Origin: Auanema rhodensis | Lineage: Eukaryota > Animalia > Nematoda | Direction of reading: 5' to 3' | NCBI GenBank assembly: GCA_964057225.1 | Contig: OZ059894.1 | Location: 16,802,001-16,866,000, forward strand | DNA length: 64,000 nucleotides | Shown: in pieces, positions 2,485-64,000 of the stretch | Layout: every line of letters begins with the position of its first letter | Position numbering within the stretch: the stretch's first letter is position 1 | Notes under the pieces: generated by a model | Databases searched by the model: none | Seen by the model: the letters and a program-made list of their open reading frames with translations, nothing else | Told to the model about the DNA's origin: nothing | Translations under genes and position numbers: made by a program

Positions 2485-3152
2485 ATGCCTAGGTATGTTG
2501 TGCTGATATCTGGTAAGAGAAAGTCGGGGAAGGACTTTTGCTCGAAGATACTATCTGATGCCCTTGGTTGTAGTTATAAATGTGCTGTCATTGGGGTATC
2601 TCACAGTTTGAAAGAAGAGTATGCCATGAAACATGGTTTGTTCTCCTAAAGAAATGCTTTGTTATGAAAGTTACAGGACTGAAATACGAAGAGTTGTTAA
2701 CTGATAGTTTATACAAAGAAGAACACAGAGCTAAGATGATTATTTGGGGTGAAGCCAAGAGAAATTCTGATCCTGGCTATTTTTGCAGGTATAGCAGTAC
2801 TATTCCTAACTGTTGTAAATTCAAAGAAAAAACACACAGGGCTGCACTTAGTTCCGCAAAAAACGCTGTTATTGCTGTTATATCGGACTGTCGAAGAAAA
2901 TCTGACATGGAAGTTTTTAAATCATTGTTTTCTGATAGAAATGTTACTACAGTTCGAATAGAAGCTAGGGAAGAGACACGTATGAAGCGTGGCTATAAAT
3001 TTGTTGATGGTGTGGATAATACTGAATCAGAATGTGGATTGGACGATTATAAATTTGACTATATTATTAAGAATGATGAATGTGTTGAGGATGTTTCAGC
3101 AGTTCTCCAAGAGCTAGCGACCACAATAATAGGAAAACTTAATGAAAATTAA
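2485..3152 (+). CDS. PMVK: Phosphomevalonate kinase, animal type (3 exons)
   Basis: P-loop ISGKRKSGKDF from ATG 2485; YKEEHRAKMIIWGEAKRNSDPGYFCR, ISDCRRKSD and GVDNTESECGLDD match animal PMVK. Introns ~2636-2676 and 2789-2839. Confidence 0.95.
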
Positions 3153-14200: not shown

Positions 14201-17200
14201 TTGATTCACCTGGCACCAACAGATTCACCATCCCATTGCCTATGGAGTTCACATTCCTCTTCCCTAATGGTCAAATCCCAGAACCAGTTCAGAAGTTTAT
14301 CATGAACTTCATTCTCACTTGGCATCACCCAACCCACAAGCCAACAAGTCCCGTGGACCCAACTGGAGAACAGCCAGAGTATGGAGAACCCACATACGAA
14401 GACCCAACAGGAGAAGAGCCAGTGTATGGAGAACCAACAAACGAATACCCAACTGGAGAAGAACCTGTATATGGAGAACCAGACGAGGAAACTGATGACG
14501 ATCTCAGTGTAGAAAACGATGAAGAATTCCCAACTGATTCATACCCAGAAGGCACAAGCCCTGAAGAAATCACCGTACCTGAAGAACTTGGAGAATCGTT
14601 CCCAGAAGGTGAGGTTCCAGAAGAGTTCGTCGACATGTTAAAGGAACTTACTTTCACCCTTGATTCACCTGGCACCAACAGATTCACCATCCCATTGCCT
14701 ATGGAGTTCACATTCCTCTTCCCTAATGGTCAAATCCCAGAACCAGTTCAGAAGTTTATCATGAACTTCATTCTCACTTGGCATCACCCAACCCACAAGC
14801 CAACAAGTCCCGTGGACCCAACTGGAGAACAGCCAGAGTATGGAGAACCCACATACGAAGACCCAACAGGACAAGAACTAGAGGATATAGAACCAAAATT
14901 CGATTTCCCAACTGGAGAAGAACCTGTATATGGAGAACCAGACGAGGAAACTGATGACGATCTCAGTGTAGAAAACGATGAAGAATTCCCAACTGATTCA
15001 TACCCAGAAGGCACAAGCCCTGAAGAGATCACCGTACCTGAAGAACTTGGAGAATCGTTCCCAGAAGGTGAGGTTCCAGAAGAATTCGTCGACATGTTAA
15101 AGGAACTTACTTTCACCCTTGATTCACCTGACACCAACAGATTCACCATCCCATTGCCTATGGAGTTCACATTCCTCTTCCCTAATGGTCAAATCCCAGA
15201 ACCAGTTCAGAAGTTTATCATGAACTTCATTCTCACTTGGCATCACCCAACCCACAAGCCAACAAGTCCCGTGGACCCAACTGGAGAACAGCCAGAGTAT
15301 GGAGAACCAAACGAGGAGACTGATGACGATCTAAGCGTAGAAAACGATGATGAGGAAGAATTACCAAAAGATTCTTATCCTCTCAGTGTTACTCCAGACG
15401 AGATTACTGTTCCCGAAGAACTTGGAGAATCGTTCCCAGAAGGTGAGGTTCCAGAAGAATTCGTCGACATGTTAAAGGAACTTACTTTCACCCTTGATTC
15501 ACCTGACACCAACAGATTCACCATCCCATTGCCTATGGAGTTCACATTCCTCTTCCCTGGTGGTCAAATCCCAGAACCAGTTCAGAAGTTTATCATGAAC
15601 TTCATTCTCACTTGGCATCACCCAGAACAATCGTCTCATCCATCCAAGGAACCTGAGCAAAACAGTCCATTCTCCCCTAACATGTACCCCGAAGATATGA
15701 GTCCTGAAGAAATTACTGTTCCTGAAGAACTCACTCCTTACTTCCCACAAGGAGAAGTTCCAGATCAATTCATCATCATGTTGCAGAAGCTCACATTCAC
15801 TCTTGATTCGCCCACAACAGATCGTTTGAAGTTCCCATTCCCAATGGAATTCACAGTTCTCTTCCCCGGAGGAAAAATTCCGTTGCCAGTTCAACAGTTC
15901 ATCACAAACTTTGTTCTTACTTGGCATAAACCACATGAACCTTCTCATCCAGTTGATGAACCCGAAGAGGAATCGGATGACGATCTCAGTGTTATAAACC
16001 CTGATGAGGAAAATCCATTCCCTACTGACTCTTACCCTATCGGAATGACTCCTGATGAGATCACAGTACCTGAAGAGCTCGCCCCATACTTCCCACAAGG
16101 ACAAGTCCCAATTCAATTTATCATCATGTTGCAGAAGCTCACATTTACTCTTGATTCACCTACAACGGATCGGTTAAACTTCCCATTCCCAATAGAATTC
16201 AAGGTTCTCTTCCCCGCAGGAAAAATTCCAAAGCCAATTCAACAGTTCATCATCAACTTTGTTCTCACTTGGCACAAACCTACAACGACATCTCCAGTTT
16301 CTGATAAGCCTGGAACTTTATATCCATCGACTATGACTCCTGATCAAATAACAGTGCCAATAATGTTTGGACAGTTCTTCCCAGGTGGTCAGATTCCAGT
16401 ACAGTTCATCATAAGCGTGAAGAAATTAGCTCAAACGATTGATAGCCCATATACTGATCGTTTCAGCTACCCATTCCCATTCGAATTCACATCAATGTTC
16501 CCAGCTGGAAATATGCCTACTGAAATCAAACAGTTCCTTAAGATTTTCATTATGACTTGGCATAAGCCAGATAATCAGTTCCCAACTGATTCTTATCCCA
16601 CTAACATGTCACCAGATCAAATCACAGTCCCATCTGATCTTGCCAAGTACTTCCCAGAAGGCAAAATTCCACAGCAATTCATTGTCTACTTGCAACAACT
16701 GGCACCAACCCTTGATCAGCCATTCACCGATCGTTACAACATCCCATTCCCATTCCAATTCTCAGGATTGTTCCCTGGTGGTAAGGTACCAGACCAGGTT
16801 AAGAGCTTTATCTTAACTTTCATCATCACATGGCACAAGCCATTGCCATTAGTTCCATCTACCAACGATGAACCTACCACTACTTCTGAGGATTTATCTG
16901 ACATTAAGGTACCTGAAGAACTCGGACAGTACTTCATTGGTGGATCTATTCCAATTCAATTCATCATATTCTTGAAAACATTGACTAAGGAGATTTCCCC
17001 CGGACATATTCCACCTATTTCTATTCCTGTCGAAGTCGTTCAATTGTTCCCTAATAACAATATTCCTCCACAAGTAATCGAATTTATTCAAAACTTCTTG
17101 ATGACCTGGTTGAATCCAACCAACCCTACTACCAATGTTGTGTCAATCTCCGTACCTCCTGAGTTGGGAATATACTTCCCCGGAGGTACTGTGCCCATGG

Positions 17201-20200
17201 AATTTTTGGTTTTCCTTCAAGATATCGCACCATCAGGCGAACATCCAATTACTATTAACCCTGATGGCTCCTTCACTATGCCACAAGAAATCTACAAATT
17301 CTGGCCTAGTGGACTTGTTCCACAACCTGTTTTGGTCTTCTTGCAAACTGTTATACAGCAATGGCAAACCCAGTCTCAAAACGACCCTCAATCACCAGAT
17401 GCTATAAACATCCCTCCCGAGATAAGTCTTTATTTCCCAGGACGACAGATTCCTCAATCATTCTTAATTTTCCTTCAAAACTTAGCACCAGGTGGAAGCA
17501 ATCCAGCTACAATGAACCCTGACGGTTCCTTCACACTGCCTCAGGAGGTATTCCAATTCTTCCCTGGAGGCCAAGTTCCACAACCTGTAATGGACTTCAT
17601 CATGTCAATTCTGAAAAAATACGTCACCATGCAATCTGGTCCAGCACAGACAATCAGCATTCCAGGCAATCTTGGGTTATACTTCCCTGGAGGAGTAGTA
17701 CCACCAACATTCATGACATTCATACAGACTATTGCCCAGAAAAAACTTTTGAAGACAAATCCTGATGGAAGCATTATTCCTCCACCGGGAATCGAACAAT
17801 TCTTCCCTTCAGGAATAGTTCCACCACCAGTTCTTGCTGTTTTTGAGCAACTTCTTTCAAATCAGCCACCAAAGAAAACCGATACTCCTGGCACTATGAC
17901 CATTGAGTTCCCTCTTAGTTTAGGACAATTTTTCCCAGGTGGAGTGATTCCTGAAGATTTCAAGATCTTCATCTTATCACTTGGACCAAGTGGATCTAAT
18001 GAGCTCAAACCATCACCTGACGGATCATACGCAATCCCACAAGGAATTCTCACCTTCTTCCCAACTGGTGATATTCCAGCTCCAGTTATGCAATTTATTC
18101 AAACTTGTATATCCACCTTCAAGAACCCATCAAACACAAAAAACATGATCACTATTCAAATTCCCGCTTCTCTTGTTGCATATTTCCCAGGAAACGTTGT
18201 ACCACAAGCTTTCGTCACATATCTTCAGAACTTATCCCCACAAGGATCAAATCCATTGATTATTAGACCAGACGGATCTTGGTCATTACCTCCTGGGCTT
18301 AATGTTCTCTTCCCCGGATACATGGTACCACAACCTGTTATGGATTTCATCTCAAATCTTGTGATGCAATGGCAAACAGGAAAACCAACACCAGATTCAG
18401 ATATCATGAACTTTAAGGAATTCACCATTCCAGCGACTATTAACCACTATTTCCCTGAAGGAAAAGTTCCCCACAGCTTCATGATGTTCTTGCAAGGATT
18501 AGCACCAAACGGAAGCAACCCTGTAGAAATTCATCCAGATGGAACTATGACTATTCCGTCCCAGATTACATCATTCTTCCCAGGCGGAATATGTCCTCCT
18601 GAGGTTATAGAAGTTGTACAAAACTTTGTTCATTCATGGTATAAGAAACCAATACAGTCTTTTAACCCTGGACAGTTGCCGTTTTTTCCGTTAGGCGGAA
18701 CTGAGAGTCCGCCGAACCAAGTATCTCCTCCAGCTGACGGTACCGAAATCCCCACCATTAACACTCCAGAAGAACAACCAACTGATGATTCTGAAACTCT
18801 AGTGGAAGAGCCCGAAATACCTATTGACGGTTCCGAAACTCCAGTCGACGAAACAGAAGTACCAACTGATGATTCTGAGACTCTAATTGAAGAACCCGAA
18901 ATACCTATTGACGGTTCCGAAACTCCAGTCGACGAAACAGAAGTACCAACTGATGATTCTGAGACTCTAATTGAAGAACCCGAAATACCTATTGACGGTT
19001 CCGAAACTCCAGTCGAAGGATCAGAAGAACCAATTGATGATTCTGAGACTCTAGTAGAAGAGCCTGAAATACCTATTGATGGCACTGAGACTCCAGTCGA
19101 AGGATCTGAAGAAGATACTGAAGATTCTGAATATCCTGATGAAGAATACGAAGAACCTACTGAAGCTTCAGAAACTCCAATAGATGAATCCGAAGAACCA
19201 ACTGAAGATTCTGAAAACCCTGACGAGGAATACGAAGAACCAACTGATGATACCGAAACTCCAGAAGAAGAATCGGAAGAGTCAACTGGTAATGTAGAAA
19301 CGCCAGGATTTGTAGCAGCAGATACAAACAGTCACACTGGTCCACAAATGCCAGGAAACGATGATGATTATAATTATTATGAAGAGAACACCGGAACTGA
19401 GCCTTCAGACGAATCGCCTGGCGATGATGATGAAGAATCAGAGGAAAACACTGGAACATCGCCTGATGACGATGATGAAGAGTACGAAGAAAACACTGGA
19501 ACATCGCCTGATGACGATGATGAAGAGTACGAAGAAAACACCGGAGGATCGCCTGGCGATGATGATGAAGAATCAGAAGAAAACACTGGAACATCGCCTG
19601 ATGACGATGATGAAGAGTACGAAGAAAACACTGGAACATCGCCTGATGACGACGATGAAGAGTACGAAGAAAACACCGGAGGATCGCCTGATGACAATGA
19701 TGAGGAATCGGAAAATAACACCGGAACATCGCCTAATGACGATGTTGAAGAATCTGAACAGAATACTGGAACATCACCTAATAGTGATGATGGAGAGTAC
19801 GAATATCCTGAAGGAGATCCTAGCTACCCATATGAGGATACCTATGAGGAATATGATCCAGAATATGATGAAGAGAACACCGGTGGCGGAAAACCAGGAG
19901 GAAACCCAGGTGGACAAGGTGGAAGCCCTGGTGGAAATGGAGGAAACCTAGGTGGAAATCCTAATGGAAACCCAGGTGGACAAGGTGGAAGCCCTGGTGG
20001 AAATGGAGGAGACCTAGGCGGAAAACCTAATGGAAACCAAGGTGGACCAATTAAAGGAAATCCTGCTGGAACTGGTAACGGACTAACACCGGGTAACGGT
20101 GGAAATGGAGGTGGACTTGGAACCGGAACAGCAGGAGGCAATCCGTCTGGCATGGGTACTGGCACAGCAGGCAATCCGTCCGGCATGGGTACTGGCACAG

Positions 20201-21537
20201 CAGGAGGCAATCCGTCCGGCATGGGTACTGGCACAGCAGGCAATCCGTCCGGCATGGGTACTGGCACAGGAGGAGGCAATCCCTCCGGCATGGGTACTGG
20301 CACAGGTGGAGGAAGCCCATCCGGCTTTGGTACTGGCACAGGAGGAGGAAGCCCATCCGGATTTGGTACTGGCACAGGAGGAGGAAGCCCATCCGGCTTT
20401 GGTACTGCTACCGGAGGCGGCTCTGGATCAGGCTTTGGTACTGCTACCGGAGGCGGCTCTGGATCAGGCTTTGGTACTGCTACCGGAGGCGGCTCTGGAT
20501 CAGGCTTTACTACATCGACAGGTGGAGGTAGTGGAAGCAATATCGGTTTTGGAACAGGAGGAAACGGTGGAATCAGCTTTGGTACTGATTCCGGAGGAGG
20601 CAGTGGATCCAGTTTTGTTACTGACACCGGATCTGCAACAGGATCTAGTTGGGTCAGTAACACTGGCTCAAGTAGTGCCAATGAATGGAAAAAGAATGCT
20701 CGGCTAAATCCTGCTCAAATCCAACAAGTCATATCGGTACGTCAAAATTGAAAACTGGATTATAAACCAATCTTTAATTTAGGCTCACAATAAACCAAGA
20801 TCCCAAATTGCCAAGGGCTTATTCTTGGATGGAACAAACTCAACAATGCCATCTGCCGCTAACATGTTCCGAGTGGTAAACATTACATAGATTAAATCAG
20901 TATTTGATTGATATGAATTCTAGAATTGGGATGAGACACTTGCAAAGAGTGCTCAGCGTGCGTCCAACACTTGCTCACCTAAATCCATTAACTTCACCAC
21001 TGTTGGTGAAAATACTTATTATGTAAAATTGGACAGATTGATTAAGAATCCACAATTTCATGTATGTCTTAAAAATAGTTCTGGATAACTATATGAACTT
21101 TTAGGCTGTGAAAGCTGTTGAATCATGGTTCGATGAGTTAGCCAATAATCCATGGAACGAACAAAGTAGCATGGCTGGTATGCAAGAAGGTTTCCAAGTG
21201 AGTTTACTGATTTATGCAGAAATATTTTACTTAAAATCACCTTTCTAACTATATTTCTAATATAATGCTTAAGGTTGCTTGGGGCCGTACTCGTAAAGTT
21301 GGTTGCGGAGTTACAAACTGTGAAAGTGGTGTAGCGGTTTTGGTCACTTGTCACTATTTGCCAAAGTAAGATTTTTTTGAATTTTAATTATAGTTTTTTA
21401 ATATTATTTGATATTTTTTTAATAAAAATGCTTTCAGACCAAAAGACTTCGGACCAATCACTTATATACCTGGACAAATGTGCTCGCAATGTACAGGAAA
21501 TACTGTTTGTAATCCGAACACAGGACTATGCATATAA
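8012..21537 (+). CDS. Giant secreted repeat protein (~4,316 aa) with a C-terminal CAP/SCP domain, 8 exons
   Basis: Exons 8012-8051 and 8292-8345 (signal peptide MMSPRLLLAISIIAVISA), 8396-20736 (12,341 bp, open), then CAP exons 20783-20875, 20924-21061, 21105-21197, 21274-21365, 21438-21537: AHNKPRSQIAKG, NWDETLA, VGEN, VAWGRTRKVGCG, VTCHY, CSQCTGNTVCNPNTGLCI*. All junctions are GT-AG and in phase. Confidence 0.9.
8173..8215. repeat. (TAA)n(TA)n microsatellite in intron 1 of the giant CAP gene
   Basis: taataataataa...atatatatat read directly. Confidence 0.9.
9088..18651 (+). repeat. Coding array of 26 copies of a ~70-80 aa domain with twin P-x2-[LF]-x2-[YFL]FP-x-G-x-[IV]P motifs
   Basis: Counted in the translation. 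The 12 central copies (~9860-15620) are near-identical in DNA, with periods 459/504/534/570/615 bp; flanking copies are diverged. Confidence 0.9.
18778..19880 (+). repeat. Acidic coding repeats (PTDDSETLIEEPEIPIDGSETPVDETEV; ENTGTSPDDDDEEYE)
   Basis: 84-bp and 45-bp tandem units visible in DNA and protein. Confidence 0.9.
19882..20670 (+). repeat. Gly-rich coding repeats (GGNPGGQGGSPGG; GGNPSGMGTGT; GGGSPSGFGTGT; GGGSGSGFGTAT)
   Basis: 33-36 bp tandem units directly upstream of the CAP domain. Confidence 0.9.
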
Positions 21538-21887
21538 AAACTCACAATTTCTTCTCTATGTCTGTATATAATGTTTTGACAATACAAATTTATATAACAT
21601 TTTGTTTTTTATTTGAACAAAAGAAGGTCAAATTAAAAATGAAACATTTATATTATAAAACAGAACAACAAACATACAAAGATACATATACTTTTATAGT
21701 TATATGTATATTTGCTCACAATTTAAAAAATCAAATTTTTTATGAGTTTTGACGTCAAAAGCATATTTTTGTTTTTGTTGATATGAACTTTCCAAATAGT
21801 TGAAAAACTGATAACCTTGTTGATCTTTGAAATAATAAACTAGAAAAATGTATTTAAACTCTTCTGGAACCAGATGTAATTCATAAC

Positions 21888-23903
21888 ATGAAACTTGCTA
21901 CTATCTTTATTACATGGCTCGTAATAGGTAAGCTTATATCTCTTATTATATTTTCGATTACTATTACCTTTATTTCAGTTGATGTAGATGCGATTGCAAT
22001 TAATCGTAGGCGAAAACAGTCATTGAGACGGGAATGTAAGTACAATTTAGTTTATTTCCATTTAAACTTCTTTCAGTTCTGCTCTCTCAAAACAGTGGAA
22101 ATGCCTTCGGTGTGCTGCTGGAAAATGTCTCTAGACAATATGATGGATCCAAGTCCATTTTAACAGATTCCACTTGGTATGATGGTCGATCGATTGATTC
22201 CCGAGCTGCTCAGAAGAAAGGAGGAAATAAGCCCCAACAGAAACCAGCTCACAAGCCCGCACCCAAGCCAGCTCACAAGCCCGCACCCAAGCCAGCTCAG
22301 AAGCCAGCACATAAGCCAGCACAAAAGCCAGCACACAAACCAGCGAAAAAACCAGTAAAAAAGCCAGTGAAGAAACCAGCAAAAAAGCCAGTGAAGAAGC
22401 CAGGATCCAAGCCACAACCTTCAAAAAAACCTGGTAATAAACCGGCAAAAAAACCTGGTCAGAGACCGGGAAAGAGACATCGCAAGAGGCGTTGTCAAAG
22501 GCACAGAAGACCTGGCAAGAGACCTGGCAGAAGACGTTGTAGAAAGCGCCGAAAAAGGCCAGGCAAAAAACCCAAACCAAATAAGAAGAAGAAGCCAGGT
22601 AAGAAACCAAAACCTCACCAAAAAAAAAAGAAAAAGACCAAGCCTGGTTCTAAACCAAAACCAGAATCCAAACCCGAGTCTAAGCCCGATTCAGGTTCAA
22701 ATTCAAAGCCGGAGTCAAAGCCGGAGTCGACGCCTGATTCGAAGCCGGAGTCGAAGCCGGAGTCGAAGCCTGAGTCAAAGCCTGATTCTAAGCCTGAGTC
22801 GAAGCCGGAGTCAAAGCCTGATTCTAAGCCTGATTCTAAGCCTGAGTCTAAGCCAGAATCGAAGCCTGAGTCGAAGCCGGAGTCGAAGCCGGAGTCGAAG
22901 CCGGAGTCCAAACCAGAGTCGAAACCAGAGTCAAAGCCAGAGTCGAAACCTGATTCAAAGCCTGAGTCAAAGCCTGAGTCAAAGCCTGAGTCGAAGCCTG
23001 AGTCGAAGCCTGAGTCAAAGCCTGAGTCGAAGCCTGAGTCGAAGCCTGAGTCAAAGCCGGAAACAAACCCTGATTCTAATCCTGAAACTTCAGCAAAACC
23101 AAAACCTGGGGCTGTTAAGTTCAATCCGAAAGCAATTCAGGAGATTCTTGATGTAAACTGATTTTTTACACTTTTAGAAATTCTTCAATAAATGAAAATA
23201 TTCAGGAGCATAACGATTTACGTTCTCGTCTTGCTAAAGGAAGCTTTAAGGATGGCAACGGAGTTTCAAAGCCTGAAGGGAGTGATATGCTGAAATTGGT
23301 TCTTATCTTTTCGAGATATAACATACAAAATCAATTTAAGGAATGGGATCCCAAATTGGCCAATTCAGCTCAAGAAGTTACTGATACATGTGAATTCAAA
23401 CACTCTGGAAAACCAGATCTTGGTGAAAATTTACATACATATACATCGTCTAAAGGCATAACAGATCCTCAAGCAGGAGTAAGTTAAATTTACTGTTTAA
23501 CAACGTATTGATGTTATATTTAGGGTAAAAAGGCCGTTGCTAGTTGGAACAGCGAGTTTGATAAGTATGGCTGGTCAAGCATGAAGCTAGAAGATAAGAT
23601 TGGACATGCTACTCAAGTAAATCTCTAAATAGATTAACTCAAAATAACATTGAAATATTCTAATACAGGATGTATGGAGTACTACGAAACGTGTTGGATG
23701 CGCCATTACCATATGCGAAGAGGGAAAACGCGGTTTAGTTGCATGTCATTATCAACCGATGTTAGAAAAGTAATGAAAACCAATTAAATTGCAATTCTTT
23801 TAGGGGTAACTACAAAAATAGAGATGTTTATGAAGCTGGAGCAGTGTGTTCGGATTGTCCAAGTGGCACAACATGCGAACGCTCAACAGGATTATGCGTT
23901 TAA
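21888..23903 (+). CDS. CAP/SCP/TAPS secreted protein 3 with Lys/Arg/Pro-rich and KP(E/D)S-repeat N-terminal region, 8 exons
   Basis: Exons 21888-21927, 21979-22035, 22077-23152, then CAP exons: [40 protein letters not shown]|[39 protein letters not shown]. Confidence 0.92.
22229..23088 (+). repeat. 12-bp coding tandem repeats: [16 protein letters not shown], an Arg/Lys block, then ~30 KP(E/D)S
   Basis: AAGCC(T/G)GAGTC(G/A) units; translation of ORF 22112-23161. Confidence 0.92.
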
Positions 23904-24274: not shown

Positions 24275-26981
24275 TTATGACAGCTTTTTTTCGCATCGTC
24301 TGCCAGTGAAGCCGTTAGGGCACATACATTTTACTTCTCCTCTCCCAGTTTTTAAACATGTTGAATTGTTTTTACAAAAACCAACACATATATCTAGAAT
24401 AAATGGATTAATCTTGTAATTGAATGAGTTCAATTATACCTGAACATGTGTATCCATTACCAACATATCCAGGCTTGCATTTACATGAATATCTGAAACA
24501 AAATTCTTTTTTGAAACTTTTTTCTATTCAAAATCCTACCTCGGTTTGTTTCCCTCATCTGGTAAATCCATACAAGCGGCTAACCAATGGCAACTATGTT
24601 TTCCAGATTTACATTGATTTGTTGATTGACATTGTATAAGAGAATTAGAGCCTGTAAAAGTATTATAAAATATTTTATTTAAAGAGAGAAAATTATAGTT
24701 TGAACCTGTTTGATAAGTTGTCGTTCCTGTTGGACATGATTTACATAAACGACTATCGTATTCATCTTCATAAGTGCCATAATCGCAAGCATTGCATTGA
24801 AAGGTTGTTATATTTAAAAATGTACCCGGATAACAAGTTCCTAAATTTGATTGCATTGATTTGTTTTCTATGAATTGAGGATAATTCTTAATTTTCATGT
24901 ATATTTCCATAATAATATTGATTCAATATGTCACTGTTCTTTTTTTTTCAGTATTCAACTTTGATTTAAAGAAGTGAAGGGATTAGTCTTACTGATCGTA
25001 CAGTCATCCAAAGATATACTTTCCTCCTTTAAAGTGGTGAGACCTGGAGGACACAGCATACAGACGCTATCTGTAGACGATTTGAACGACCCAATCGGAC
25101 AGCTGACACATTTCTGTCCGTCTGGAGAGCGTTGAGATCCTGTTGGACAATTTTCTGAAAGAAAAGCAGCTTGTCCTCGTTTTTCTGAAGATGAAGAAGA
25201 ACATATTCCATTTCTATTCTTTAAGATTGAAATTGGCATACGTTTTCATTTAAATGGCACAAATGGAATGACGTCATTTTTCTTCCAAATTAATTATCAA
25301 TTGATTAGAAATGATGTTCTATTATTATAACTTATTCTCATTTTAAATTTTCTTATCATAAAGACAAAGAACAGCTTTACTTGTTCTTTTCCAGTGACTA
25401 TCTATTACATGTAACAAGTTTTTGTTTTACTGAAAAAAAAGATGCTTCATGTAACAAACCTAAACAATGATCAATTGATGTAGAATTTAAGTATAATGGA
25501 ACTGTTCCAGGTGGACATGATAAACAGCTAAACATAAATATTAATTTAATACAATAAGAAAAGAAAGCTCACCGATTACTTCCACTTTCTGGCTGATATC
25601 CACGAAAACTACATGGCTCACAGAATTTGGACGCCGAATCATAGAAGAAGCCAGGAGGGCAGATAGCTTAAAACACTTGTTGAACATTGGTTTTAAGTTT
25701 CTATGATGTATATACCATAACAATCAGAATGCTTGATCGCTCCCATAATTGATGTGGTTGTCTTAATCGAATTAAAGCTACAAATCAAATATACGAAATA
25801 AAATTACCAATGGACATTGATGACAAAATACTTGACCAGGCTCAGGTTGATATTCTCCGCGGCCACATATTTGGCATTGTGCTTCATGGAAAAAGTAGCC
25901 TGGTTTGCATTTGCCTATGATACCATTACTATGAAGTATTTTTGATCAAACGAGTGCAAACAATATAAATTATATTCTTTCAAGTTATTGTGATATGTGT
26001 ATCTTGATTGAAACATGAACATGAGATTAGTTTTTGCCTGTAAATATACATAAAATGTAAAATTTATTTATATTGTGTATATGATTAGATATATTGATAA
26101 GAAAGGACAAGTGAATGCTATGAATATTGTTATTACATATAGATATTTGATGGTTATGATGATGTTCATGATGATGATGATGATAATAATGATGATGATT
26201 TTGATAGTGTTTTCTTAAGGTTTTCAAAGTGCAACAAGACGATCAACATCAATAGGTTCACGTTCCACCATTGGTTCATCACGCAATTTAAAATCCTTAC
26301 GGCATTTATCTCCGTCAATAAGTGTAGCTCCCTTATAACAGAAGAATGCTTCGTCAAATGATAATATTGAAGTTGGTTTACCCAAAACCTAAATGATTTC
26401 GTTTTTGGTAATTGTATCATGATCATCTTCTACCTTTAATGCGTTGGTGTATTGGAAAATTCCTCCTTTTAATCCAATTTGGGTGACAACACTAACTGTG
26501 GAAGTGGCATCAACCTTTGCATTCTTGATTGGATCTCTGATATAAAGATAATACTTTAAACATTCTTGAAATAAAGCTACCTTTCAGCAATGAAAGTAAC
26601 ATTGATTCTATACTGAGATGACCCCATAGATTCTCCAGTTACTTGAGCTTTTCCGCAATCATTAGAACTTCTGAAAGTGAAAACATAACAAAAAAATAAT
26701 CTAGAAGAATCTATACCGTTCGCCACCACATATCAGCCAATGCTTGTTAATGAACTTCAATGAAGCTAAGACACTACTTCTCATTACTGAGCTCCATCTT
26801 AAGAAAATAATCAAATTGTGTTAGAAATGTTAACTCACTTTTCAATTTTTTCAATTTCTGCTGTATTAGCATTATCATAATTAATCTGAAGTCTAGCTAC
26901 TCGAACTGCTGGCGAGACAAACTCATCTTGTGTAAATGTAATTTGAACAAGAAATAAAATAGAAAAAATATATTTCAACAT
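24275..26981 (-). CDS. Secreted protein with several GCC2/GCC3 (ephrin-receptor-like Cys) repeats and two C-terminal EGF-like domains
   Basis: TTTCAG then ATG 26981, signal peptide MLKYIFSILFLVQITFT; repeats such as CVSCPIGSFKSSTDSVCMLCPPGLTT and CNACDYGTYEDEYDSRLCKSCPTGTTT; EGF NQCKSGKHSCHWLAACMD...CKPGYVGNG and CMCPNGFTGRRCEKKLS*. Confidence 0.85.
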
Positions 26982-31989: not shown

Positions 31990-33672
31990 ATAGAACCATC
32001 ACGAAAGCTTTTTTTTATATGGTTATAAAGAGGTGTGACCTCTATGGAAAAAAAAAGAAAACCGGCCAGGTTTCAGAGAGAAATACATAAAAAGTATACT
32101 TTAGAAAATTTTGATTTATGAAAGAAAATGACAAAAATTGGTTAAAAAAAGATATGAAATTTTACAGAGCATGCGGTAAAAGTTCGCAAGATTATACCAA
32201 CTTTTCAATTACGAAACCAGAAATAGAATATAATGAAATTGAACGAATAAAAACTGTGGATAAATGGAAGAACATGTTGAATTATGAATTCTCATTGAAG
32301 AACTATTGAAAGGAAAATTAATAGCCGACTGAATTATGTATGTTCGGAACTGTGCGTGAGAGAGAAAACAGGAGAGATATGCATATGAGGCAAGAAGATT
32401 GTCATATATAATAAGACCTGAATTAATGGATATAAAATTCAAAAATCTTTTTCAACAATAATAACAACAATAACAACAACAACAACAACAACAAGATCTT
32501 CATATCCATGAATAAACAACATTATCTGATATTTTATCCTTTTTTTTTCTTAAACAAACCTAAAAAGGTATCAAATATGTCGATATTGTCGAGTAGATGG
32601 AATCGATAATCGACAACCTTAATTGTTGTTCGAAGAAAGAGAAGAAAATGACAGTCTGAGAATGAAGAGTAACGAGGACGTAAATGAGACAGTTTGAAAT
32701 TAGAAAGATGAATGAGAGAAAAGAGAATTTTCTCCAATATAATGAAAAAGACAGAAGTGAGAAACATGAAAATTAAGGCAATGGATCACTCATTTGCAGC
32801 ATGGCATGATGTAAAGGATTGGTAACGTTCATTATATAGTTTTCTTATTTTAAATTAAAGTTATAATTGTTAATGCTCGTTAATATACTATATACTAGTA
32901 CAATAGTATTCAAGGTTACCTTCGATATTTGTTCGAAAATAATAAATAAGATTCGTAAGAATAGAAATAGAGAGTAGAAGGCTGAATATTTAATAGAGCA
33001 TGATTTTTCCAATCTACATATATACACATTCATACAAAGTATATTAATCATTTAACTACTGCATGAGAAAGAGGAGTGAGAGAAGGAGCAATAGAGGGGT
33101 GAAAACATACATATATCGAGTAATTAAATTTGAACATCAAAATATTACAAAAGACGCCCTTTAATCCAATTTAAAATGTTTTATTATATATTTTATTAAA
33201 TAATTTTAAAAACAGAATAAAAAAAATAATAAGACAAGATGATTCAAATAATAATACATAACCTTATTTTAACTCAACTATATAATTTATGGTGAATGTA
33301 AAAGAGACAGTTCAATAAAGGTAGTCAAATAGGGCTATTGATTCAACGAAGCTTCTCAATACCGGCGTCAAAGCGTAGATCGAACAAATAGAAAACGAGA
33401 ATTGTAAGAGAGAGGATAGTAGACTTCTTCACGCAATCTTTGCATATATTGACCCGTTCCTTTCCTTATTGTTCTGATGCTAAGAAATTACACAAGATGC
33501 ATACAATTCTTATTTTGAATGTTCCCAAAAATATTCTATTCTGTATCCTAAAATCAGTGCCAACGGCTCATTTCTTCATCACGAATTTGAAGGTTGTAGT
33601 TTACCTGGTAGCTCGTTCAAGTGCAATCATAATCCTGATGAGTTACCTTAATTCCGAGTGTTAAAGAAGAAA
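31990..33672 (+). pseudogene. Decayed inverted paralog of the Zn-knuckle gene at 35967-41628
   Basis: 33595-33672 reads CSLPGSSFKCNHNPDELP*FRVLKKK vs CGLPGDSFKCNRYPDELSKFQILKKN in the gene (62/78 nt identical by hand count, in-frame TAA). 32040-32440 has weaker, frameshifted similarity to exon 1 (KKDMKFYRACGK vs KKSIQFYVYAGR; ERYAYEARRLSYIIRPE vs KRYDYRRVMALLSMPE). Confidence 0.65.
32453..32493. repeat. (AAC/AAT)n microsatellite
   Basis: caacaataataacaacaataacaacaacaacaacaacaac read directly. Confidence 0.85.
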
Positions 33673-34164
33673 AACACAAAAAACAATATTTTATTTTGAA
33701 ACAACATAAAGAAGATAAGAACTGTGAGAATTTATGACTTTTCTGCGTAAAAAATTCTCAAATAATAATACTATTTGAATCTATATTACTAAGAATTCCC
33801 CCCCCATCCAAGTTTTGTAGCCCAACATAGAAAATTATCACCAAATACCATGCCATCACTAACTTATATTATAAAATACAGAAATTCCTAAGTTTTAAGT
33901 AATGAATTTACATTTCATAATAAATCTTTTGAATGAAACTTATTGAATCAAGGATATACTAATAAATACTTACATTTTCTTAATATATTATACTCAATCA
34001 TGTGACAACTATTTAATAGATTCAAATAATAAATTACATTTGTTTACTTATTGGTTACAAATGAACTAACAAATTTATAACTATACGTGAAACATGTTTG
34101 TTATGAATCAGAATCTCTCACATTTAAGATGAGCAATTTAGATGGTGTCGTATTTGACTAAGTG

Positions 34165-34288
34165 ACTGATAAGACAAACAACTGAACTGCAACCTGAAAA
34201 TATTAACAATTTGGATGTTTTTTCTAAACAAGATTACCGTTTTGATAAAAGACTCCAAAGATAACACCTGATAAAAGATTGTATAAAA
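34165..34288 (+). promoter_or_regulatory. GATA-site cluster plus TATA box upstream of the peptide precursor gene
   Basis: ACTGATAAG 34165-34173, TGATAA 34243, AGATAA 34259, TGATAA 34269, TATAAAA 34282; ATG at 34340. Confidence 0.6.
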
Positions 34289-34339
34289 CATGAGAAATTC
34301 GAGTTTAAATCATATTTTTTTAATCAGCGCATCAACACT

Positions 34340-34948
34340 ATGAAAAGAATAGTCGTTAAATCCATTTTGATTGTCCTATTATACGCAACATGCTCAAGTT
34401 GTGAAAAGGGTTAGTTTTATACTTTTTTCTAATATAGTTTGCTTCATCGGATCGCCTTTAAAAAATATTTTATAGATTCAACCAATGAAACGGAACCAAT
34501 CACTTCATTAAATGCAACATTAATCAGCCCCACTCCATCCAATACAACTTCTGATGACAATATTACAGCTAGTACAAATCCGACTTCAGAGTTAGCTAAA
34601 GAAATGGATGCTGATATTTCCAAAATAATGAGCAAAATGGAAGAAATGGTGGATATACTTGATGATTGGAAGAGTATTGAGCTTATGGCCCAATCTATTT
34701 TTGAAATAGATCCAACTCTGGCTGAACCAGATGAAGACAACGATATTCAAAACGAAGAATCTTCTGACTCTGATACACCTCATATACGTGAAAAAAGAGG
34801 GGGAAAATTTTTGAAAAAGGTAAAGAAAATATTCAAGAAGGCATTATCCTGCTACATTTCGAGAAAAAAGAGATCTATAGATCTCAAACCACGCAAAAGT
34901 CCTGTTTTCATAGACACATCTTTTCATAAAAAACCTCTTTCAAATTGA
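34340..34948 (+). CDS. Secreted prepropeptide: signal peptide, acidic pro-region, REKR-GGKFLKKVKKIFKKALSCYIS-RKKR, basic tail (candidate antimicrobial peptide precursor)
   Basis: Exon 34340-34409 (MKRIVVKSILIVLLYATCSSCEK, donor GTTAGT) splices in phase to 34476-34948; two R-x-K-R furin sites flank a 21-aa peptide with 7 Lys and no acidic residue. Confidence 0.8.
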
Positions 34949-35966
34949 AATGGAATATTAAAATTGTTGTATATAAAATTTTAATCAATAAATATTATAT
35001 ATGTAAATATGTTATCGCTAGATTCAAAAAATCCAACGAAGCAATGAAACCAAATCAAATAATAAATACGTCTTTGACAAAGATATTAATTTACGATGTT
35101 TTTTTATTGGATCTGTTTTCATTTTCACATTATTATGCATTACACCGGTTGTACCTTAAATCATGTACTTTTAAGAAGAGATGAAACTAAGTTTGAACCT
35201 GAATCTATCCCTTGTTTTGTGGTTACGGTTACGATTGTTTTCATAAATAATCCTATGAAATGGTTTTAAATTATTTTATCAGTTGTTGTTTCCAGCCAAT
35301 TTTAGTTCGATTGATTTTGTTTGGTTCTGAGCTACTTCCAGCAGCGCACTTCTTAACTAATCAAAAGTTGGATGTGATTGTATAGTGTATGATATGAGTT
35401 CAAAATAAAATTGTACAATTTACTCATAGGATTATTCGAATCATATTTTTGCACTCCAACATACTAATTGTTCTGATTTTAAGTAAAAAATATAAGAAAT
35501 GTGATCTGGTAAAATTTCATAAACTGAAAAGGAAATACCTGAGAGAAATTCTCATTACGTTTCTCATTTAACTATAATTTAAAGAAGTTTTAATAAAGCT
35601 ATTGTCATAATCTAGGTTGTATACAGTTCCGTCCATCTTATAGTTTTTACTGTTAGAGCGGTTCTTGTCAAAACTGCTTCAACAAGTTTGCTGATTGTCG
35701 TTGGATATTAACGTTATTAAGGTCTATGTGTGAATCAGAAGATCTATAACACATAGTTATCACAAATAAATTTCCAAATACTAATGTTTCATTATTTATT
35801 TTCTATAATTATATTTGTATTTCGAATGATAAAATTATGTGCAATTATGAGAAGGTATAAAATAATGATATAGTTCCTAACATTATAAAACAAATGCAAC
35901 AAAAAAGGCAATGATTGTAACAATAATCAGACAAGAAACAGATCTTTCAAGAGCAAAAAAATGGAA

Positions 35967-38900
35967 TTATGCTTGAGCATTTTTGGAAGGTAATAGCCGG
36001 TATATACATATAACTGAATTGTGTCCCAAAAATTTACAATATTTACAAGGTTGCCTACTGTATTCACATTCTATTGGATTACCATAAACATCGAAATGTT
36101 CTGGTTTAAAGCAAATCGTACATAGTGAGTTTTTCTTTAATATTTGGAATTTAGATAATTCATCAGGATAACGATTGCATTTAAACGAGTCACCAGGTAA
36201 GCCACAAAATATACACTTCAGGTTTTGATCTCCGGGATGAAATGCATGCAGATTTTTGTAAGTTCCTAAAGTACAAATGTTAGAGTAGACATAGAAAATA
36301 TTAAATTTACCGGATTGATTCGCTGGATATATGCTCGAAGATTGTACGGCCGCTGGAGAATTTTGCGTATTGTCTGCTGAATAAGAGGAATAAATAGCAT
36401 TACTCATAATTATAGCTTACGGAAATTTTGACGAAAAGGCATCATCATTCGATTCGAGTTTGTAGAGGACAGATTTGAATTCCTTGAGGGAAAATTAGAA
36501 TTCATAGAGGGCAAATTTGAGTTCATCGGTGGAAGGTTGGGGCTCATAGATGCATGATTGGAGTTCATATGCGGGGGGTGGGGGTTCATAGATGCATGAT
36601 TGGGGTTCATAGATGCATGATTGGGGTTCATAGATGCATGATTGGGGTTCATAGATGCATGATTGGGGTTCATAGATACATGATTGGAGCTCATAGATAC
36701 ACGATTGGAAGGTGCATGATTGGGGTTCATAGATGGAAAATGGGAATTCACGGAGGTGTTATTCGAATTAGCTAAAGAGACATTGGGATTCCTATAGTTA
36801 TGATTTCCCATCATATATGAAGCCCCGCCATTGGTGTAACTGGTAGGAACGTATTGTGAGGAATTGGCCTGATTAATGTTCGGAGCAAACCTTTGATCTA
36901 AATAAGATGGGATAATAGTTTTAATATGTTAAACTCTTCTTACTGTAATTTAAATAAGGATTAAATCCGTTTTGAACAGAATGCATAGATGTTGTGGGTT
37001 GTGCAGGAACATCTGAAACATACATGCCTTATTAATTAATAAATTTCTGTCACGAACTATAATTGAATCCATAGTTAGACTGTGAAATATCCGCTCTATT
37101 ATGTTGTACATACATTGGTTGAGATGTGTGAACTTGCCCTATAATTCAAATGATTATTGAGATATGATTTTTACGAAAAAAATTACTTTGATTCATCTGT
37201 TGATAAAACGTTGTAGAATTATTGACCGGCATTCGTCCTTGCTGGTAATTCATATTTGCCGGTGGCATCGGCGGACAAGGAACATACACGGGATTGGTAG
37301 GCACATAAGATGCTACAACAGGGGAATGACATTCCCGTTTAACACTTTGTTGATTAAACAGTGGTTGTTCACGTGCAGGCTCCACAGTAATGTTAACTTC
37401 TGTTTTAACAGTAACTTGATGGTTCTCCTGATCTTGACTCGTGTTTTCTAGTTTCACTTGAATATTATTTACAGCTCTAGCAACTTGTAATGGATTTTCT
37501 AAGACATCCCTCAACATCAGATGAGGCAGAGTTGGGGTTTTCGTTTGTTTTCCTGAAAATAAATTTTTTTTTTCATTTTTAAAAACTTTTTATTTACTTA
37601 CTCTTTTTAGCACCAGTGAGTAGAAGCTGCCCTTTTTCTGTATTTCGGTTCGAGGACGACTGGGGAAAAGAGTTTTGAGAACGGTTATTATCTGAAAAAT
37701 GTGATATTTAAATCGAATTGATATCATTTTCTTTTACACTTCTGTATAAATATAAGATTGACTTTAATCCATAATTCAAGTTAAATTAGTTTTTGTATTT
37801 CAAAAAAGATCTTTACGACCTCTGTTTATGTTTGGTGTTGAAGTTGAAAAGCCAATTTGCACTGTATAAAATAAATGCTGGCTAACCAAATTCACTCCAG
37901 AGAATTAACAATTTGATAACTTAAAAACATATATCAACAAAAATCTTACTCTGTACAGACTGATCTTGGTCATCATTTTCAGACTTTATATATTGATTCT
38001 GAATTATATTCGCAGGTGGTACAGATTGACTCTGAATAATATTCGCAGGTGGTACAGATTGATTTTGAGGAATATTTCCAGCTTTATTTAATAAAGCTTG
38101 CAACATAGTATTTCGTTCAACGCCTAAAATTATAAATTGAAACTCTGTATGAGGTACACACAAACATACCCAGCCTTGTCGATTGATTCTCAGCAGCAGG
38201 AGGACGCAGCATCTCGTTAGATTCTGGAGCTAATGTTTCTGGTATGAGAACGGGCATTTCATTGAATTCTTCGATACTTGCAACAACTGAAGCAAATTTC
38301 ATAAATTAAACTTATGTATATTGCTAACCTGTTTGTTTATTGCTGGAAGCTTCAACAGGCTTTTGCAATTGATTAGTAGAGTTGCTCTCGATATTTGACT
38401 GAACATCACAATTAACTTCTTGACCTGAAATAAACCATACTTTCTTATACTTCATTTTTTTTGTTTTACCTTCTATTTGATGTCTTAGCGAAAGAAGTGT
38501 ACTATTCTCTGTGCTTGACAAATTAATACTTTCCCTTTGACTTTCGGTATTTCTCATTTGAGTATCATGTGGAACTTGAGCATTACGATGGATATGTTGC
38601 TCTAGAACCTTTGGAATATTACATAGAGCTCCTGTGTTCAAACGATTCGTTGCTTGTTGCGGTACATGAGAATTACTCAAAGTAGACAGTTGTTGAATAG
38701 AGCCCAAAACGTTTGGAACCTGATTTCGAACAGAAGAAGCATTTGTATTTTCTGGCCGATCGATCAGAGGTATAGAAGGGAAAATAGCCGAGTTATGACC
38801 ATGCTCTTGATTTTGAGGTCTACGACGCGGATCAGTCAATTTTTCACCGCTTCTTGGCTTTTTCTGAGGTTTCGTTCCTCCTTTCTCTAAAGATATGACG

Positions 38901-49058: not shown

Positions 49059-52000
49059 TTACATTCTTAATGAATGGATTGGCAAATGTTTCTTCCGGCG
49101 TACGCGCTTGTGTGGTTGTTCTTCTTGTTGTTGTATGAGAGTTTCTGGGGTTTGTTCTTCTTTATCGACGCTTTCAGCATCATATGGTGTGCCATAAATC
49201 AGCATAAATCTGAAACAAAAGATTTTGCAAAGATGATATGTAGGTTTACATACTTTCCGTCGATTTCAAGTTTGCAAACCAAGTCGCCGGCAAAATGTAC
49301 TGTTTGAGCAAAATCTCCTAGTGATACAACACTTTCAAAGGGATGGTCAAACATTTCTTCACTTTTAGACTGAATTAGATAGAGATATTTGTAAACATGG
49401 TAAACAAGGATAAATACCTGTATCATATTAGCAATTTTTCCAATATTGCACATATTGAATACAGGATCCTTTTTAACGTCTTGAACAACATCTTCAACTA
49501 AGTTATTTAACATCAAGTTACAACAAACATAACCTGAATGAAGTTAATATTAGAGATTATAATTGTTTTAATTTATTTACCGGAAGGATTGTGAAAACAT
49601 GTTGGAAGAGGTACTTCTAGTTTTGGAGGATAATAGAACTTTGATGCTTTACCATCACTATATGGTGTCTTTTTTCCTCTATCAATCTGAATTATTTGAT
49701 TTAATTCAATTAGTTAATACTTGAAAACAAACACGTGAACCAGATCCACCAACCAAAGGTTTTGTTCCATTTGAATCAGGACCATCATTCTCTTCGGAAT
49801 CATCCTCATTGGAAAACTAAACTCAATTTAAATTTTAGCTAAAAAAACAAATTATTCTTTTTTCACCTCTTCTTCGATTTCAACATCATTTTCTTCTAAT
49901 TCCTTCTTAGCATTTTCCGCCGATTCATCTTGTTCTTCCTCAGATCCGTTTTGAGTTTTTTTACTTTGAAGTTTTTTTCGATCAACTGTTGCATCTTTTA
50001 CATTTCCTTTTTTAACGTTCTGAGCGGATGTGCTGACTTTTTTTTTTGATTTTGCGTCGCTTGTTTTTTCTTCTTTCGGTTTTGATTTAGTTTTGGGCTT
50101 TTCCTTTTTTGTTTTTTGATTGGGCTCCTTTTCTTTTCTTTTTTCTTGCTTTTCTTCTTTCTTTGACAGCTTATCCGATTTCCTATCATGCTTCTTCTTT
50201 TTGCTCTTCTTTGATGAGTAAGAACTTATATCATTTTCATCCTCATTTTCGAATTCTTCTTCTTCGTTGTCGGCAATGATATCCTCAATATCTTCTTCTT
50301 CTTCTTCATTTTCATTTGAAAAAGTTTTCTCCTCATCTGAGTCAAAGTACTCATCAGCATCCTTTACTTTTCCCTTTTTGCTTAATTTGTGTTTCTTTTC
50401 TTTCTTCTTCTGAAACACATTATAAGAAAAATATGAATTAGTGACATACCGTCTTTTCCTTTTCTTTTTTCTTTTTTTTATCTTTTACTTCTTCCTTATT
50501 GCTTCCTTTTTTGCTATTTTTATCATTCTTCTTTTTCTCTTTCGTTTTCTTCTTAAGCTTGTCTTTTTTATTTTGTTTTGATTTTTTCTGTATTAATTCA
50601 AATAAAAATAAATAAATCAGAGTTTATTTACCTTGTTCTTTCCATGTTCATCTTCATCGTCTTCATCATCTTTCTCTTCGTCATCCTCATCCTCATGTTT
50701 ACCTTTTGTTTTTTTCTTTTTTTTCTTTCCCTTTTCTTCGCTATCTTTATCTTCATCAGAATTCTTCTCATCCTCATCGCTTTCTGTCTTTTTATGCTTT
50801 TTCTTGCCATCTTCGTCTTCATCTTCGTCATCGTCTTTTTCTTCGTCTTCGTCTTCATTCTCATCTTCATCTTCATCTTCATCATCGTCTTCATCTTCAT
50901 TTGATTCGTCGTCGTCCTCATCAGAGTCGTCATCATCTTCATTACTGTCGTCATCTTCTTCTGGTCGCTCCGAATATGTATTCGGACTTGGAATTACAGG
51001 ATAAGTGTCAGTGGGTACAGGAGGAGCAGGAGCATAAACTGCTTGATTGGGTTGAGGTGGTGGAGGTGGCGGCGGAGGTGGAGGTGGTGGAGGAACAGTG
51101 GGAGTCACAGGAGGAGCCGAATTATAATTTCCCGTATTTGTCAAACGGTACTTATCATTCACAGCGTTTCTCTGATCATTCTGTTCATCATATCTCTCAT
51201 TGTATTTCTGCTTCTTTTTTCTATTTTTTGGATTAGCTTGATCTCGAGCTATTTTACCTCTTTCAAGTTCTAACACCGTTTCAGCTGTTCCGCTATGCTC
51301 TGTTACTGTCTCTTCCACAAATCTCTGAAAGAAAAAACAATACTGGTTAAATAAGCTATAATTGATCTTACCGTATCAGTTTTACCAGCAAAATCAATTA
51401 TTCTTGGTGTGTCAGTACCAAACTGCGTTATTCGATCAAGTATCATTTTGGCTTTTGAGTTTGTCGGATCTGTTGCCGACGTATTGTTCGTTGATGGAGT
51501 AAACTGATGGAAACGATTTGATGGAGTAGCTGTGGTTCCTTTTGTTGTTGTAGTAGTTGTAGCAGTAGTTTGTCTTGTAGTAGTCGCGGTAGTTGCATGT
51601 CTAGTAGTTGTTCGCATCGTTGTTCGAACTGTTGGTTCAATTCCCGAAACACTAGCCCTCTGAGCAAAAGAAGATACAGGTATATTGGAATTAGGTAATG
51701 CTGACGGCCACATCATAGTCTTTAAAGGCGCTGGTGGAACTTGTGGGTTTCTAGGAGGAGTTGGAGCTGAAGAACGAGTGGAAGCACTAGGTTGAGTGCT
51801 GGTTATTGGTTTTAGAGAAGGTAATACGGTTTTAGTCGTAGGATGAACTACCTGTACACAAGAAACATGTTGTTACATATATAAATTGAAAGAAAAAAAC
51901 CTGTGGAGGTCGTTGTAATTCACGATTTACTGGTTTCTTTTCATTGCTAACATCCTTTAATTGTTATGAACTAATTTAGCTCAAACTAATGTTTAAACGT

Positions 52001-62630: not shown

Positions 62631-62960
62631 TGCTGAAAAGAATTCATAATAATAATAATGAAATTTTGATAAAGAACTATTCTGAATTGGATGATATAAA
62701 CTAACATATTCTACGATACAATCATTATTGTGAAACTACTAACATTCAATAACTTCATGATATATCGCATCGAAAATATAATTTTATATTGCAAAACAAA
62801 AAAATTTGCATTTGATTTCGATTCAAAACTAGAAAAACGATGGGATTTTTCATGGTACATAAAGCAATAAATATGAACTATAACATTTGATAAAAAAATT
62901 TAAAAACACAAAACTTGAAAACAAAGTTCAATACTGAAAGCCAACCCATTTAGAACAGAA

Positions 62961-63036
62961 GTGAAGCTGAGGTATTTCATTATCAAAAATTAAATAGTTT
63001 CCGTTTTATCATATAGAATAATAACCTCAGCTTCAC
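62961..63036. repeat. 13-bp perfect inverted repeat with a 50-bp AT-rich spacer
   Basis: GTGAAGCTGAGGT (62961-62973) and ACCTCAGCTTCAC (63024-63036). Confidence 0.8.
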
Positions 63037-64000
63037 GTCATAGAATTTATAAATAACGTAAAACAGCACGTTGAATAGTGAGTAAGTGTACAAAAATAGA
63101 ACAAAATTGCACAAGTTTCAATATAATTATACATAGAACGTTATTCTAGATGAAGAAATCGATGTGACTCATGGGGCATGTAGAGAATTTGTGAGAGAGA
63201 AGAAGAGAAGAGAACAATAACACGTGATGTCAAAGCAATTGACACGTGATCAGTGAATGGATATACATATGTGTTCACTAGGCATAGGATTCTCCTATCC
63301 TCGATATACCCACCGGCTATATTAACTGCAGGTCCACAACCACAAAGCATTGCCTTATTTGATTAACTTTGTAACAAGTTAAGTTACGGAGGAAGCAGAA
63401 AGTAAAGCAGTTGCAACAGACGAAGTAGGTAAGCTTACTACAATTGGAGTCTAGATTTGTGGGTTGCCCAGCAACTCCAACACTTGCACATGTTTTGCTC
63501 TTTGCTTTTTTTGTTATTAGAGGAATAGTTAGAGTAGTTTAAAATCTATTGTATTATACTTGATCTTTATTCACTTTAACGGTAGATGTTTGTTACCATT
63601 GTTAAACAGTTAGTATTGACAGAGAGAACTTTTCGCGTTACAAGTGATGGACTCGATTGTTCGATAACTTAGATCATATTGAATGAAAAAAAGCTATTCT
63701 TCATTCTTTTTATAACTTTTCAAGCTTGAATAGCATGAAATATACAGGGAAATGTGGTAAAAAAACATAATTATATAATCATATAGTTAATTCTAGTTAG
63801 ATTATATCAAAATATTAAAATATAATAGCACGTGTTATAGTCGTCAGGGAAGAAGAAATCGATGAAACACATTGTGTAGGGGAAGGATGGTGTTGGTCTA
63901 GTAGTGAGGAGGGCTTGACAACAGAGAAAGAGAGCAAAAACATATAAACAGGGAAAACGGCACATTGGTTTCCATCTGGCTTCTTGCACCCAAGACTTTG

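Follow-up and report, generated by a model that had tools for sequence, protein, structure and literature searches.

A spliced two-exon gene and its surroundings

The plus strand of the 64-kb window (by which we mean the whole stretch of DNA that was analyzed) carries a two-exon gene at 34340-34948, encoding a product of 180 amino acids. Exon 1 (34340-34409) consists of MKRIVVKSILIVLLYATCSSCEK plus one base, or 23 codons and one base, and encodes a signal-peptide-like sequence. The intron (34410-34475) is 66 nt long, of phase 1 and 24% G+C; it opens with GTTAGT from 34410 and closes with TTTTATAG up to 34475, giving GT..AG borders. Exon 2 (34476-34948) keeps the same frame and ends in a TGA stop codon at 34946-34948. 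The coding sequence has a G+C content of 34%, compared with 24% for the intron and 27-29% for the flanks. An earlier reading of the letters, hereafter the first-pass annotation, had placed the gene at 34340-34948, and these coordinates proved exact; its feature list implied two exons and left the intron unmentioned.

To this locus (33300-36300) we mapped the contigs of four public sequencing runs, all from one 2019 study, each comprising ~20 Mb of contigs and catalogued merely as “RNA?”. A single contig in each run starts at 34315-34355, runs to 34408, skips 66 nt and resumes at 34475, continuing in three of the runs to 34954/34955. The joint, which lies within one contig per run at 34408/34475 (cut +1, GT..AG), is present in 4/4 runs and confirms the two-exon structure. 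The contigs of all four runs match the window at 100% identity with zero differences, and in run X4 an additional contig covers the exon-2 part. In all four runs, contigs are absent from the intron and from both flanks (1 kb upstream and 850 nt downstream). Because the GT..AG joint is precise, the flanks are silent and the 20-Mb assemblies are transcriptome-like, we take the gene as transcribed and spliced.

The ATG at 34340 opens the frame and is the first ATG of the transcript; the 5′ untranslated part under the transcript contigs (34315-34339, +) contains no ATG upstream of it. A short element in this region, TTTTTTTAATCAG (34310-34327), resembles a nematode 3′ splice (trans-splice) acceptor; its end, at 34327, is 13 nt from the ATG. 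Of the contigs, one begins upstream of the end of this element, at 34315, and the others start at 34326, 34330 and 34355; no spliced-leader letters were seen in the contigs near 34327. The probable 3′ end of the transcript lies at 34925-34955 (+). Here CATAAA occurs inside the coding sequence at 34925, and the contigs of three runs stop at 34954/34955, 6-7 nt past the stop codon, contig ends being weak evidence for the end of an RNA. A canonical AATAAA at 34987 lies beyond contig coverage. The transcript may have a very short 3′ UTR, with its poly(A) signal inside the coding sequence.

The ratio of contig depth between this gene and the neighboring minus-strand gene (measured over 35801-36266) is ~1 in three runs and ~37-40 in X4, where the depth of the gene is ~1000 and that of its neighbor 27, although contig depth reflects expression poorly. 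Read with this caution, and with run identities that are coded, the X4 ratio hints at strong specificity for a condition, stage or sex. Run X4 also contains a 155-nt contig whose first 30 letters lie on the opposite strand of 34491-34520. This fold-back chimera, which comes from the run with the greatest depth over the gene, is most likely an artefact of assembly or library.

Upstream of the gene, three same-strand TGATAA (GATA-factor) sites at 34167-34274 (+) form a putative promoter element. They begin at 34167 (ACTGATAAG), 34243 and 34269, at distances of 173, 97 and 71 nt from the ATG. At least three TGATAA/TTATCA sites per 150 bp occur in just two places in the 64-kb window, one being this cluster. 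The second, at 62857-63037, may be another GATA-driven promoter. TGATAA, the ELT-2 site, is enriched in the intestinal promoters of C. elegans, with ELT-2 occupying a fraction of its possible sites and GATA sites being present in non-intestinal promoters as well (PMC10411582). As a motif cluster, the three sites hint at expression in gut or epidermis.

The neighboring genes in the window are unrelated to the peptide-precursor gene. The minus-strand gene at 35801-36814 is expressed, with a splice junction at 36266/36267 (loose ends, 4/4 runs), and combines a Cys/His-rich, zinc-knuckle-like C-terminus (35967-36407) with an Asn/Pro-rich repeat of the MNPNHAS type (36410-36814); Pfam gave no match for either of these ORFs. 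Also on the minus strand, Cys-rich repeats of the Ephrin_rec_like type are present in two exon-sized ORFs at 24536-25239 (Pfam E = 5e-9 and 5e-8), which probably belong to a larger gene with multiple exons that encodes a protein of the membrane or a secreted one. An exon of phosphomevalonate kinase lies at 2580-3152 (+; Pfam E = 2e-19). Repetitive coding potential is found at 8398-23161 (+), where a 4117-codon open frame of long near-identical acidic/Pro-rich repeats precedes a Lys/Pro-rich, ESKP-repeat ORF at 22112-23161 (+). A run of minus-strand ORFs at 49852-51716 encodes low-complexity segments that are extremely acidic (D/E-rich), poly-Pro or Lys-rich, and the ORF at 49852-50415 had no match in Pfam. 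Rfam and tRNA scans of the window returned nothing.

Layout of the precursor and helix of the 21-mer

The exon 1 product begins with MKR, followed by a hydrophobic core, SILIVLL, and the small residues ATCSSC. The core has a Kyte-Doolittle mean of 3.4 over its 7 residues, and the -3/-1 rule holds after residues 16 and 18-21. Exon 2 opens with an S/T-rich spacer of 45 residues (34476-34612, +) that contains four N-x-S/T sequons (NET, NAT, NTT and NIT) where 1.7 are expected. An acidic pro-region of 58 residues (34613-34786, +) comes next, with 18 D+E to 3 K+R and a net charge of -15; the pI of the exon-2 part up to REKR is 4.05. REKR itself, a furin-type R-x-K-R site at 34787-34798 (+), immediately precedes the 21-mer GGKFLKKVKKIFKKALSCYIS (34799-34861, +), which has a charge of +7, a pI of 10.2, one Cys, two Gly and one Tyr, and which would have a monoisotopic mass of 2385.43 if released as such. 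A second furin-type site, RKKR (34862-34873, +), separates the 21-mer from a C-terminal 24-mer (34874-34945, +) with a net charge of +3, three Pro, no amphipathic pattern and a calculated mass of 2753.52 Da.

Charge along the precursor follows the succession -15, +7, +3, with R-x-K/R-R at both borders of the 21-mer. The background frequency of R-x-[KR]-R in the six-frame stop-free stretches of the window is 0.00094 per residue, and the two sites here flank the 21-mer exactly. The first-pass annotation had described a signal peptide, an S/T-rich and then acidic pro-region, REKR and RKKR sites around a 21-mer with seven Lys, and a second basic 24-mer; all of these are present in the product, and the position that it gave for the 21-mer is exact.

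Furin-type convertases, whose counterparts in C. elegans are KPC-1, BLI-4, AEX-5 and EGL-3, normally cleave secretory proteins at R-x-K/R-R sites. The signal-peptide-like exon 1 and the two sites at the exact borders of the 21-mer give the product a layout of the proprotein-convertase type, from which cleavage may be expected, and we consider it fairly probable that the 21-mer is excised at both sites. Three internal KK pairs could be open to a PC2-type convertase, which counts against a role in host defense.

The layout, in which basic sites bracket the peptides that come after a signal peptide, would also suit a signaling-peptide precursor, neuropeptide-like or of the gut-hormone kind, with the 21-mer, the 24-mer or both serving as receptor ligand; intestine-derived, convertase-processed signaling peptides do exist in C. 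elegans, for example NLP-40. We judge such a function to be distinctly unlikely here, as neither basic site has an amidation Gly ahead of it, the product is without a repeated peptide motif, and seven Lys in a perfect amphipathic pattern, though typical of peptides that act on membranes, are unusual for nematode neuropeptides. Neuropeptide families are, moreover, usually conserved across nematodes, whereas no relative of this gene was found in the searches described below.

On a helical wheel of the 21-mer, F4, L5, V8, I11, F12, A15, L16 and Y19 fall within one 140-degree arc, and the seven Lys all lie on the opposite face; the hydrophobic residues picked out by the first-pass annotation share this arc. 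The hydrophobic moment is 0.57 for the 21-mer (Eisenberg scale, 100 degrees) and 0.89 for an 11-residue core. Shuffling the 21 residues gives 0.225 +/- 0.114, and 0.3% of the shuffled versions reach 0.57. For a wider background we took all stop-free stretches of at least 30 aa in the six frames of the window. Among the 43,938 18-mers of this 64-kb set, four distinct segments combine a moment of at least 0.70 with a charge of at least +6, and the ORFs that contain the other three are short, at 42-64 aa. In a genome of 29% G+C, Lys, Phe, Ile and Leu come cheaply, so Lys-rich amphipathic stretches arise more easily, and this too weighs against a host-defense role; the AT-rich genome nevertheless leaves the phasing of the residues and the placement of the sites unexplained.

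By the criteria for linear cationic helical antimicrobial peptides (AMPs), namely fewer than 100 residues, a net cationic charge and amphipathicity (PMC6780910), the 21-mer is a candidate for the linear cationic α-helical class, which is operational and not a homology family and whose most important trait is the killing of microbes: it has 21 residues, a charge of +7, a moment of 0.57 and a predicted helix. The prediction comes from AlphaFold2, run on the single sequence without an alignment, which places helices at 36-77 (the acidic part) and 102-133 (across the basic part) with a mean pLDDT of 59. Helix 36-77 is long and amphipathic, with a pLDDT of ~70-80 and a moment of up to 0.5 over 18-residue windows.

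If the protein stays uncleaved, the modeled acidic and basic helices could remain paired for good, a further point against host defense. The product would then be a secreted glycoprotein whose acidic and basic helices form a charge-complementary hairpin, or whose basic helix tethers it to the glycocalyx, cuticle, eggshell, sperm or another anionic surface. The two long predicted helices, the amphipathicity of the acidic one and the four sequons, which suggest a stable glycoprotein, all agree with this. R-x-K/R-R sites placed exactly at both ends of the basic segment argue against it, as do the low confidence of the model and the absence from Pfam and the PDB of any fold or family match for a stable domain, and we regard an uncleaved glycoprotein as unlikely, though worth bearing in mind.

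Relatives and look-alikes

Sequence searches were queried with the exon-2 product, and some with the 21-mer, against protein libraries that include neither this species nor its sister species. A word-indexed search of 5.8 billion proteins yielded 15 candidates, none scoring, and an exhaustive phmmer (HMMER) search of 1.84 billion representatives gave 0 matches at E <= 0.001. The PDB, searched by sequence, contained no match to the whole exon-2 product; with the 21-mer alone it returned two non-significant matches, the nearest chain being 2mwt, a snake cathelicidin-like peptide (E = 6.8). Neither the whole product nor the 21-mer had a usable match in the ESM Atlas. Of 596 pattern matches in JGI metagenome contigs none was confirmed, a full-text literature search for the peptide string gave no match, and tblastn detected no paralogues within the window.

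In Pfam-A, the sole match of the exon-2 product with E up to 1 was DUF5893 (E = 0.066; 13.7 bits against a cutoff of 25). This match lies below the Pfam threshold and was rejected as noise. As explanations of the protein, both DUF5893 and an analogy with granins or convertase inhibitors are unsupported.

For the phosphomevalonate kinase exon at 2580-3152, the highest-identity match in the 5.8-billion-protein collection is from C. elegans, at 48%. Since the best identity of this kinase is just 48%, we conclude that the species and its close kin are absent from that collection; the value also agrees with a nematode that is not a Caenorhabditis. On these searches the peptide-precursor gene appears to be lineage-restricted, an orphan gene, and orphan status would be compatible with a fast-evolving effector. 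That it is a real, expressed and spliced orphan gene encoding a secretory precursor is, in our assessment, highly probable.

The same lack of relatives in any searched library, the AT-rich genome, and the very short 3′ UTR with its non-canonical poly(A) signal might instead indicate an orphan transcript, recently born de novo or decaying fast, that has no selected function and owes its AMP-like look to AT-rich coding and chance. The transcript is abundant and cleanly spliced, however, and by our estimate, which uses a stop-codon frequency of ~0.08, an exon of 157 codons without a stop would arise at 29% G+C with a chance as low as ~2e-6 per start. The signal peptide, the sequons, the partition of charge, two exact furin sites and a moment in the top 0.3% are jointly very unlikely to arise by chance, and we consider a functionless transcript improbable.

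Local alignment showed 10/14 identities between the 21-mer and crotalicidin, with a score reached by 0/2000 shuffles, and 9/12 identities with pexiganan (GKFLKK-KK--K), with a score reached by 0.2% of 2000 shuffles; the pexiganan sequence was taken from PMC5783979, and that of crotalicidin was likewise verified in a paper. Pexiganan, a synthetic magainin analogue, was the likeness that the first-pass annotation had drawn. It holds at 9/12 identities, and the snake cathelicidins turn out to be a nearer look-alike still. Both are membrane-active peptides that have been tested. The likeness to them is a common pattern that goes beyond composition, heptad-like in the case of the snake cathelicidins, and a convergence without homology.

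Crotalicidin also bears on the target of the peptide. Peptides of a similar pattern, crotalicidin among them, act on eukaryotic membranes too (PMC10671781). The 21-mer could have eukaryotic cells as its target, with a cytolytic or adhesive action, either as a sex- or stage-specific reproductive factor or in defense against fungi, predators or competitors, and the high X4 depth beside a ratio of ~1 in the other runs would fit such specificity, as far as depth, a poor expression measure, can be read. The coded runs, however, allow no link to sex or stage, and the GATA cluster better suits gut or epidermis; we give this possibility only a slim chance.

Snake cathelicidins (crotalicidin and 2mwt) offer the best local look-alike, KF(L/F)KKVKK..KK.L with 10/14 identities, and their cationic helix likewise lies near the C-terminal end of a larger pro-protein from which proteolysis frees it, as we propose here. 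Pfam detected no cathelin domain in the exon-2 product, and its pro-region has zero Cys, compared with four conserved Cys in cathelicidins. The frog-skin precursors of magainins and dermaseptins consist of a signal peptide, an acidic propiece, a basic cleavage site and a Lys-rich amphipathic helix, and the precursor described here has the same layout. The conserved signal/propiece module of the frog precursors is absent (no Pfam match), hence no homology. The pro-region here is also five times longer and bears putative glycosylation, and its sites are tetrabasic and furin-type, not simple KR. With neither a match to a Pfam model nor relatives in the protein libraries, the gene falls outside the frog-skin active peptides.

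Spider-venom latarcins, cupiennins and lycosins are linear cationic helices released from precursors with a signal peptide, an acidic propeptide and a motif that ends in Arg with an upstream Glu. REKR fits this “processing quadruplet motif”. Precursors of spider linear cytolytic peptides sometimes hold several helical peptides, whereas here there is a single helical peptide with furin-type sites; the spider peptides are, furthermore, venom-gland products of arthropods and unrelated in sequence.

The closest nematode precedent is provided by Ascaris suum cecropins P1-P4, which are linear, amphipathic, α-helical cationic peptides with an acidic pro-region. Nematode cecropins are confined to Ascaridoidea (PMC10506718). 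Their precursors have the order signal peptide, mature peptide, C-terminal acidic pro-region, and for Ascaris cecropins as for α-defensins, a masking of the basic mature peptide by the acidic pro-region has been proposed (PMC6780910). In the gene described here the acidic pro-region is N-terminal to the peptide, unlike the C-terminal one of the Ascaris cecropins, and the precursor adds an S/T-rich spacer with sequons, a C-terminal 24-mer and one Cys in the peptide. It has no sequence similarity to the Ascaris cecropins, and we found in it neither the cecropin signature or Pfam match nor the cecropin precursor order. Between the Ascaris cecropin peptide and its acidic pro-region, a multibasic site was reportedly noted by Pillai et al. 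in 2005.

The remaining nematode groups are likewise made up of secreted, mostly cationic effectors, many of them from gut or epidermis. A motif with at least 6 Cys is the defining mark of the CS-αβ (ABF), nemapore and diapausin groups, and enrichment in Gly that of the glycine-rich group (PMC10506718). The exon-2 product has one Cys, in the 21-mer, and none elsewhere, which sets it apart from the ABF, nemapore and diapausin groups; with two Gly and one Tyr, the 21-mer also differs from the glycine-rich NLP/CNC peptides. We therefore agree with the first-pass annotation that the peptide is unlike ABF defensins, caenopores and Gly/Tyr-rich NLP/CNC peptides, and find that none of the five nematode AMP groups fits.

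A candidate host-defense peptide in a free-living nematode

The explanation that we favor, with confidence falling a little short of even, is a secreted prepropeptide that would deliver a linear cationic amphipathic α-helical host-defense peptide. In this the first-pass annotation, which read the gene as an AMP precursor, is borne out as to the sequence-level elements, all of which are present in a gene that is expressed and spliced; the cleavage and the activity that it also assumed are steps that we infer.

In our proposed mechanism, the signal peptide would carry the precursor into the ER, where the S/T-rich spacer may become N-glycosylated, and the acidic, partly helical pro-region (net -15) would mask the +7 helix during transport. 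A furin-type proprotein convertase would then cut after REKR and RKKR, and a carboxypeptidase would remove the C-terminal basic residues. Once free, the 21-mer would fold on anionic membranes, presenting its 140-degree hydrophobic face with the seven Lys opposite, and permeabilize them. The GATA-site cluster suggests that production would take place in the intestine (or the epidermis), where a bacterivore meets microbes.

Judged by its sequence, the peptide would be the first candidate for a linear helical AMP among nematodes that do not belong to Ascaridoidea. A bolder proposal, which we put forward as possible and with more doubt than belief, is that the gene is the founding member of a sixth nematode AMP group: a lineage-restricted, gut-expressed, furin-released Lys-rich helix in a free-living rhabditid, independent of the Ascarid cecropins and converged with frog magainin analogues and snake cathelicidins on KF(L/F)KK-KK.

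A phylum-wide survey of nematode AMPs, based on homology, searched for five known groups only, found linear helical peptides (cecropins) in Ascarids only, and held that undiscovered groups probably exist (PMC10506718). The gene described here offers an actual, expressed candidate for a group of this kind, from a free-living worm that can be cultured, and a 21-residue peptide is cheap to synthesize. Should the peptide prove inactive, it would warn against taking charge and amphipathicity as signs of AMP function when the genome is AT-rich. Should it prove active, nematodes too would use the magainin/cathelicidin type of solution, and part of the nematode immune repertoire would lie hidden in orphan genes.
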